The translations under genes were made by a program, and so were the position numbers. A DNA stretch of 64,000 nucleotides. It comes from Macrostomum lignano (Eukaryota). The notes beneath the pieces were generated by a model. That model was not told the DNA's origin. It worked only from the letters and a program-made list of their open reading frames with translations, and searched no databases. Each line of letters begins with the position of its first letter. Position 1 is the stretch's first letter. Location: positions 310,001 through 374,000 of the forward strand of contig NIVC01000461.1 in the NCBI GenBank assembly GCA_002269645.1. Reading direction: 5' to 3'. Below, piece after piece: positions 50,778-51,271 of the stretch.

Positions 50778-51271
50778 TCATGCATGCTTGCCGAATGGCA
50801 TGTGTCCTTTGCCGAATCTCATGTGTCGCTTGCCGAATCTCATGTATGGCTTGCCGAATCTCATGTGTCGCTTGCCGAATGGCATGTGTCGCTTGCCGAA
50901 TCTCATGTATCGCTTGCCGAATGGCATGTGTCGCTTGCCGAATCTCATGTATCGCTTGCCGAATGGCGTGTGTCGCTTGCCGAATGGCATGTGCCGCTTG
51001 CCGAACCGCATTCGACTCCCTCTGTGGTCCAGCCACACCAGTTCAGCCATCTCCGCAGCCACTCTTTTTTGCATTTGTTGAGTAACCACAGATTTGACGG
51101 AGTTGTCACGGTCTAAAAGAAAAAAATTTGAATTTTTCCAATAAAAATGCCTAGATTAAGCTGCGCTGTAGCAAAAATACGATAGCAATTACCCGCCAGA
51201 ATGTCCTCCGCCTCGGAGCAACCAGCCATCAGAGCTGACAAGTACAGAAAACACAGAAGTAGCGGCCTCAT
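50778..51271 (-). CDS. FMRFamide-like neuropeptide precursor, 137 aa; exons 51271-51193 and 51112-50778
   Basis: Signal peptide [21 protein letters not shown]; 80-bp phase-1 intron (G|gtaatt...ttttag|AC); repeated X-M-[R/P]-F-G-K-R units (amidation Gly + dibasic cleavage site). Confidence 0.88.

Follow-up and report, generated by a model that had tools for sequence, protein, structure and literature searches.

The minus strand of the window, i.e., the whole 64-kb stretch of DNA analysed here, contains from 51271 to 50778 what is likely to be a real two-exon Macrostomum gene for a multi-copy FMRFamide-like (FLP) secretory precursor of the YMRF-amide type, as judged from the organisation of its sequence. 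A preliminary description had called this locus a neuropeptide precursor disguised as a minisatellite, and the claim held up: the 21-nt units are accompanied by a signal peptide, KR and GKR sites, promoter motifs, an intron and a poly(A) signal. It is the unique flanks of the array that outweigh a reading by chance, namely the signal-peptide exon, the canonical intron that restores the RFGKR frame, the promoter motifs and the poly(A) signal. New here are the PF units as well as the documented minisatellite architecture with its 3′ erosion, whereas the kind of gene and the presence of YMRFamide in the genus were known. The gene model comprises the following features:

51404..51408, minus strand: CCAAT-box-like motif upstream of the gene, putative promoter element (read from the sequence)
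51377..51383, minus strand: TATA-box-like motif TATAAAT, 106 nt 5′ of the ATG, putative promoter element (read from the sequence)
51271..50778, minus strand: coding sequence of the small two-exon gene (sequence reading and splice model)
51271, minus strand: ATG with a purine (G) at -3 (read from the sequence)
51193..51271, minus strand: coding part of exon 1, 79 nt, with 26 residues and the first base of Asp27; signal peptide
51113..51192, minus strand: intron, 80 nt, phase 1, GT..AG, G/GTAATT ... TTTTTTTCTTTTAG/AC (slashes at the splice sites)
50778..51112, minus strand: coding part of exon 2, with the spacer propeptide, 11 heptad units and TGA (50780-50778)
50784..51014, minus strand: 11 in-frame 21-nt units X-M/T-(R/P)-F-G-K-R with a higher-order 42-nt period (Tandem Repeats Finder and unit table)
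50713..50783, minus strand: frameshifted, decayed remainder of the array, now 3′UTR (out-of-frame continuation)
50710..50712, minus strand: stop codon TAA of a putative longer, ancestral reading frame (read from the sequence)
50693..50698, minus strand: AATAAA poly(A) signal, which follows the ancestral stop after 12 nt and the present one after ~80 nt

Transcription would start near 51350, which would give a 5′UTR of ~80 nt. The intron opens with GTAATT, closes with TTTTCTTTTAG and has a strong polypyrimidine tract; its removal puts exon 1 in frame with the RFGKR reading frame, and an unspliced reading runs into a stop at 51113. The spliced product is a predicted preproprotein of 137 aa, whose N-terminus has the parts of a signal peptide, with a basic n-region (R2), a hydrophobic core at residues 4-14 (Kyte-Doolittle mean 2.5) and the small residues A-G-C, and which is likely to be cut after Cys18. 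Among the 1854 ATGs in the window, the one at 51271 was the sole signal-peptide-like start according to a strict heuristic filter that was made by the authors and defined after the sequence had been seen. Trans-splicing of exon 2 to a spliced leader, presumably one that ends in ATG, was considered and rejected, as it would yield the wrong frame (MTTPSNLW…). The open reading frames that cross the array on the plus strand or in other frames were likewise set aside: neither a signal peptide nor a gene context goes with them, and they are open simply because the repeat unit is free of stops.

The array was detected by Tandem Repeats Finder (TRF) with a period of 21 (50736-51011, 13.2 copies, 83% matches) and was also scored with a period of 42 (89% matches). 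Counted from 51014 downward, the in-frame units are:

Unit 1: RMRFGKR, Arg codon CGG
Unit 2: HMPFGKR
Unit 3: HTPFGKR
Unit 4: YMRFGKR
Unit 5: HMPFGKR
Unit 6: YMRFGKR
Unit 7: HMPFGKR
Unit 8: HMRFGKP, cleavage site lost
Unit 9: YMRFGKR
Unit 10: HMRFGKG, cleavage site lost
Unit 11: HMPFGKH, cleavage site lost

Units 1-7 are thus seven consecutive clean X-X-X-F-G-K-R units, and unit 11 is followed by one A residue and the stop. Several copies are identical (2, 5 and 7; 4, 6 and 9; the pair 4-5 and the pair 6-7). Pro stands in place of Arg in 5 of the 11 in-frame units, and the dibasic site is lost in 3 of the 11. An intact C-terminal GKR site is found in four RF units (RMRF and three copies of YMRF, one of which is fused upstream to HMRFGKP), and two more RF units have damaged sites. 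The Arg codon is AGA in most units and the synonymous CGG in unit 1, while the Pro codon is CCA. The sequence TTCGGCAAGCG occurs 11 times in the window, against 0.74 expected, and every one of these occurrences lies inside the array.

Variation between the units is unevenly placed. The nine columns of the Phe-Gly-Lys codons show a single change, which is synonymous, and 10 of the 12 other columns vary (hypergeometric P = 0.0017, a value that stems from a post-hoc grouping of columns and from units that are not independent, 2/5/7 and 4/6/9 being identical). Since the units are not independent, the signs of constraint within the array are weak, and the constancy of the Phe-Gly-Lys codons and the synonymous Arg codons could count only as secondary, weak signs of coding constraint; units 2-7 may be so uniform because they were duplicated recently, and not through purifying selection. 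The preliminary description had also expected the units to be lost to repeat masking, and TRF indeed flags 50727-51011, more than half of the coding sequence, so that masking would plausibly hide the array. A short neuropeptide gene with a minisatellite as its coding part is thus missed both under repeat masking and by domain models such as Pfam FARP, a point of note for cataloguing neuropeptides in genomes as rich in repeats as that of Macrostomum.

In established prohormone processing, convertases cleave at KR, carboxypeptidases trim the ends and peptidylglycine alpha-amidating monooxygenase (PAM) amidates at Gly. The signal peptide (residues 1 to ~18) would send the precursor into the regulated secretory pathway, where prohormone convertases would cut at the KR sites, a carboxypeptidase-E-type enzyme would trim the basic residues and PAM would turn the C-terminal Gly into the amide. 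The predicted products are two free copies of YMRF-NH2, three of HMPF-NH2 and one of HTPF-NH2, and beyond these one N-terminally extended …RMRF-NH2, the fused HMRFGKP-YMRF amide and a non-amidated C-terminal tail. The product list given earlier thus stands for HMPFa (three copies), HTPFa, YMRFa (two copies) and the fused HMRF-GKP-YMRFa. Its first entry, GSRMRFa, is the exception, as it requires a non-canonical monobasic cut after a single Arg, which is not favoured in a context where P4, P6 and P8 are all non-basic. By default unit 1 would yield a 20-mer, or MRFa instead if the RGSR site were used. From the gene model we infer that the locus is transcribed and spliced and that its product is processed, and by analogy with known peptides the YMRFamide-type products would be the active FLPs of the gene. 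For the PF peptides the default view is that they would be hitch-hiking by-products with unknown or no activity.

The alternation of RF and PF units can be explained by the way in which the array would have grown. The two types differ at three nucleotides (TAC…AGA versus CAC…CCA), and the HMRF units resemble products of recombination between them. The Pro codon CCA is one step away from CGA (Arg), for which AGA is a synonymous alternative, and CGA was perhaps the ancestral Arg codon behind CCA. The array would have grown as a 42-nt two-unit repeat slipped or crossed over unequally, the same process as that which fills the genome with minisatellites. Amplification of this dimer accounts for both the alternation and the half-and-half share of the two types, and the abundance of PF units is therefore no evidence of selection. 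Both types are nevertheless old, since they are also present in the eroded ends of the array. Peptide copy number and peptide variants would in this gene be made by the same unequal exchange as non-coding minisatellites.

The preliminary description had gone further and argued, from the PF share of about half of the units, for a second peptide class. That argument finds no support, as the share follows from the amplification of the 42-nt dimer and disabling changes occur in the same array. Given a real gene, the proposal itself, i.e., that HMPF-NH2 and HTPF-NH2 are a selected second bioactive class, co-released with YMRFamide and acting on a receptor of their own or as antagonist or modulator of the FLP receptor, is rather unlikely. 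It draws on the age and spread of the Pro units, which are found in unit 2 as well as in the decayed 3′ units 13-14 and have diverged (HTPF; CCC versus CCA), and on the perfect KR…GKR sites that are kept in four of them. Mixed peptide types on a single precursor are also common, RYamides and RFamides having been described together on one flatworm precursor (PMC3503879), and XHFamide peptides are listed for a polyclad flatworm (PMC13551398). A -MPFamide ending has a precedent in the QFMPF-amide of an unrelated metagenomic precursor, P0001.

Against these points stand the dimer amplification, with units 4-5 identical to units 6-7, the single-step mutation (CGA to CCA) that suffices to change the pharmacophore Arg, and the plainly disabling changes that are tolerated in the same array. 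No MPFG-unit homologue was seen among the best 150 of 291 matches of a HMMER search of 1.84 billion representatives, the exception elsewhere being P0001, and metagenome scans with the degenerate pattern MPFGKR[HY]MRFGK and with a protein-guided method returned nothing. In the literature, HMPFa, HMPFG, MPFGKR and HTPFG were not found in a neuropeptide sense, and only YMRFa was picked for assay from the Macrostomum RFamide propeptide (PMC9234716). It is quite unlikely that PFamides are selected Macrostomum transmitters that share both gene and vesicles with YMRFamide and either have their own receptor or gate the FLP response. If they were, a new ligand class would have been born within a neuropeptide gene by a single Arg-to-Pro step and spread by minisatellite dynamics, and active PF peptides would be a new type of ligand in flatworm signalling, which is an anthelmintic target area.

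Decay has set in over the 3′ third of the array. The stop after unit 11 was created by a 1-nt deletion together with two substitutions, and the remnant continues in another frame, where it forms the tail of the open reading frame 50710..51036 (minus strand). The disabling changes in the array comprise GKP, GKG, GKH, the frameshift, FDKG and SGRG, and three dead units now lie in the 3′UTR. The gene would once have read through ~14 units, of which the last three, already degenerate, appear to have been lost.

These changes can also be read as the decay of the whole locus, i.e., as that of a redundant YMRFamide paralogue under relaxed constraint in a genome with duplicated subgenomes, with the working gene elsewhere; the locus would in that case be on its way to pseudogenisation through R-to-P changes, loss of cleavage sites and a frameshift. 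The concentration of damage in the 3′ half of the array suits this explanation, as does the replacement of the RFamide-defining Arg by Pro in nearly half of the in-frame units. Other genes of the window have diverged paralogues (63-81% identity) in the M. lignano assembly (P0187), and the precursor protein was not returned from the M. lignano gene sets in the database by two protein searches. The contig around P0187 has different neighbours and contains no FG[KR][KR] array. A decaying paralogue is nonetheless distinctly unlikely: all parts needed for expression are intact (promoter motifs, ATG, signal peptide, both splice sites, seven clean units, poly(A) signal), the erosion is limited to the end of the array, as is usual in functional multi-copy precursors and in tandem arrays at large, and the frameshift removed only units that were already dead.

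The window itself is saturated with minisatellites. TRF lists 53 rows with a score of at least 200 (overlapping rows represent the same array), the periods range between 4 and 272 nt, and the purity of most arrays is 90-99%; those at 13945-16251, 8259-9390, 61674-63564 and 55911-57042 are examples, and many of them yield long spurious open reading frames in several frames. In about a third of the arrays the period is a multiple of 3. An open frame with an aromatic-Gly-basic-basic motif is present in about 0.24% of random 21-nt units (so that the motif says little by itself), the array can be read without a stop in five of the six frames, and spurious RFGKR-like minisatellite reading frames do exist in databases (P0037, P0057, P0070), e.g., …KIKFGKRQIKFGKR… and …TRRFGKRTRRFGKR…. 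That a non-coding minisatellite should read RFGKR by chance, with signal peptide, intron and promoter as coincidences, is for all that very improbable, as the unique flanks add up to a coherent gene, YMRFamide has been reported independently from Macrostomum (PMC9234716), and the array is the least homogeneous in the window (83% versus 90-99% for the others), its variation sparing the Phe-Gly-Lys codons.

A 16-nt minisatellite, GAGACAGGCTGACACT (51436-51910), grades into (GACA)n and lies directly upstream of the CCAAT and TATA motifs of the neuropeptide gene, where it could affect the spacing or activity of the promoter. A Doc2/rabphilin-like double-C2-domain gene (55481-61309, plus strand), a regulator of calcium-dependent exocytosis, has its start ~4.7 kb away from the neuropeptide gene; 21-, 23- and 19-nt minisatellites lie in its introns, and its closeness is probably coincidental. 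No other neuropeptide-like array was found in the 64-kb window.

The window contains further genes. A T-box gene (16329-17935, plus strand) has an intronic 12-nt minisatellite at 16773-17647. By local tblastn, the M. lignano UniProt model A0A1I8FBN4 (P0188) matched exons of the window with 100% identity over 96 aa and 97-100% and 98% elsewhere. This model looks chimeric, its residues 1-153 corresponding to the T-box exons and residues 153-402 matching antisense frames of a PAN/C-type-lectin gene at 21167-24171. Three paralogous genes for secreted PAN/apple and C-type-lectin proteins are present at 21086-24104 (minus), 31129-33822 (minus) and 38767-40042 (plus), as a segmental duplication with the third copy inverted. 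M. lignano BOX15_Mlig021632g1, with which they have 63-81% identity, has other neighbours on its contig. Inside the first duplicated lectin segment, a 272-nt tandem repeat (24936-25880, 3.5 copies, 99% identical) adjoins (AGAT)n and 17-nt arrays. A coronin gene (2135-5659, minus strand) with DUF1899 and WD40 exons has a 14-nt minisatellite (2993-3800) between exons; its identity is at most 58% in the protein database and 29-53% to the M. lignano coronin model, and with identities this low its own model seems to be missing from the public gene sets.

Copies of a tRNA-derived SINE are found at 45935-46100 (plus strand), 12900-13110 and 44918-45001, with GGGGCTGTAGCCTAGTGGTCAGAGCG…GGTTCGATTC… followed by a conserved core, GTGTCCTTGAGCAAGAC…, and are 93-96% identical to a copy on another M. 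lignano contig (L002). ARAGORN called none of the SINE copies as a tRNA, and Rfam and tRNA scans of the window returned nothing. Interspersed repeats that are common to the window and an M. lignano contig have 85-96% identity. In a search with a composite of the T-box, C-type-lectin, PAN and C2 exons, M. lignano ranked first for every part, and the DNA of the window is assigned to M. lignano or a near-identical relative.

The position of the precursor among known families was examined by several searches. In the HMMER search (1.84 billion representatives; best 150 of 291 matches inspected, many of them spurious repeat reading frames), the best true homologues were spiralian FMRFa/YMRFa precursors, led by XP_064635473.1 of Lineus longissimus (E = 1e-41), and no orthologue was found among the matches inspected. 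Every alignment was limited to the repeat region, i.e., query residues ~55-135 with the tetrapeptide-GKR units, and the N-terminal 60 residues had no match in this search. A word-indexed protein search gave P0001 as its top match (E = 2e-6, 32% identity) and only weak matches to YMRFG. No significant Pfam family was obtained for the precursor, and the FARP model (PF01581), which is 11 residues long and expects a spacer context, did not match even at E <= 10, while Lineus P0035 scored 73 bits and P0007 scored 42 bits in the same scan.

What the precursor has of an FLP/FaRP precursor are the signal peptide, by the heuristic filter, and the multiple Arg-Phe-Gly-dibasic units; a FARP match is lacking. 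The features of a spiralian FMRFamide-gene orthologue, i.e., a long precursor, acidic spacers and similarity outside the repeats, are replaced here by contiguous units in a product of 137 aa. By structural criteria it would thus be classed as an FLP precursor, and orthology with the spiralian FMRFamide gene is not claimed.

The closest comparison is within the genus. Dandamudi et al. (2022, PMC9234716) took YMRFa from the Macrostomum RFamide propeptide Mlig001796.g3 as the only peptide chosen for testing, and it had no effect on three M. lignano DEG/ENaC channels. This propeptide comes from the same genus and probably the same species, and has the same predicted peptide, YMRF-NH2; the RFamide half of the present gene is therefore of a known kind, and the locus may be an already catalogued gene. 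Among flatworms more widely, YMRFamide is grouped with GYIRFamide and RYIRFamide as flatworm FLPs in a passage of Novozhilova et al. (2010, PMC2919380) that cites McVeigh et al. 2009, and flatworm FLPs are described there as myoexcitatory in schistosome muscle via a GPCR/PKC/voltage-gated calcium channel route. The flatworm affinity suggested in the preliminary description agrees with the Macrostomum source of the DNA and with these reports of YMRFamide (PMC9234716, PMC2919380). YIRFamide, GYIRFamide and RYIRFamide are likewise short amidated peptides of the aromatic-aliphatic-Arg-Phe type, from which the units in the window differ by Met instead of Ile at position 2, by an N-terminal Tyr or His and, in half of them, by Pro in place of Arg.

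Sulfakinin precursors of arthropods contain one or two long, Tyr-sulfated peptides. Their C-terminal tetrapeptide (…GHMRFamide) is identical to HMRF-amide, which is a resemblance only, as both HMRF units in the window have lost their cleavage sites. The “MRF peptides” of acoels were rejected as relatives, their motif being an N-terminal MRFxP and thus unrelated. Metagenomic P0001 (JGI 3300032739, locus L001) is an unannotated precursor of 134 aa with DFLHFa, HFMNFa, QFMPFa, EFLHFa and DFMAFa; it has a signal peptide, GKR sites and x-[L/M]-x-Phe-amides with a variable penultimate residue, including an -MPF-amide. Unlike the gene in the window, it has longer peptides, spacers and no RF units, and the likeness could be convergent.

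The spiralian precursors are 300-550 aa long, with most copies set apart by acidic spacers, and are recognised by Pfam FARP, in contrast to the precursor in the window with its abutting units and its lack of a FARP match or of similarity outside the units. The units themselves are nonetheless of the same make. The “FMRF-amide neuropeptides-like” protein of Lineus longissimus contains YMRFa ~20 times in tetrapeptide-Gly-Lys-Arg units as in the window, and YMRFamide is a product of the FMRFamide gene in the brachiopod Novocrania (PMC5577450). YMRF is thus the exact peptide of a nemertean and a brachiopod, and the FMRFa precursors of molluscs and annelids share the multi-copy tetrapeptide-Gly-Lys-Arg units.
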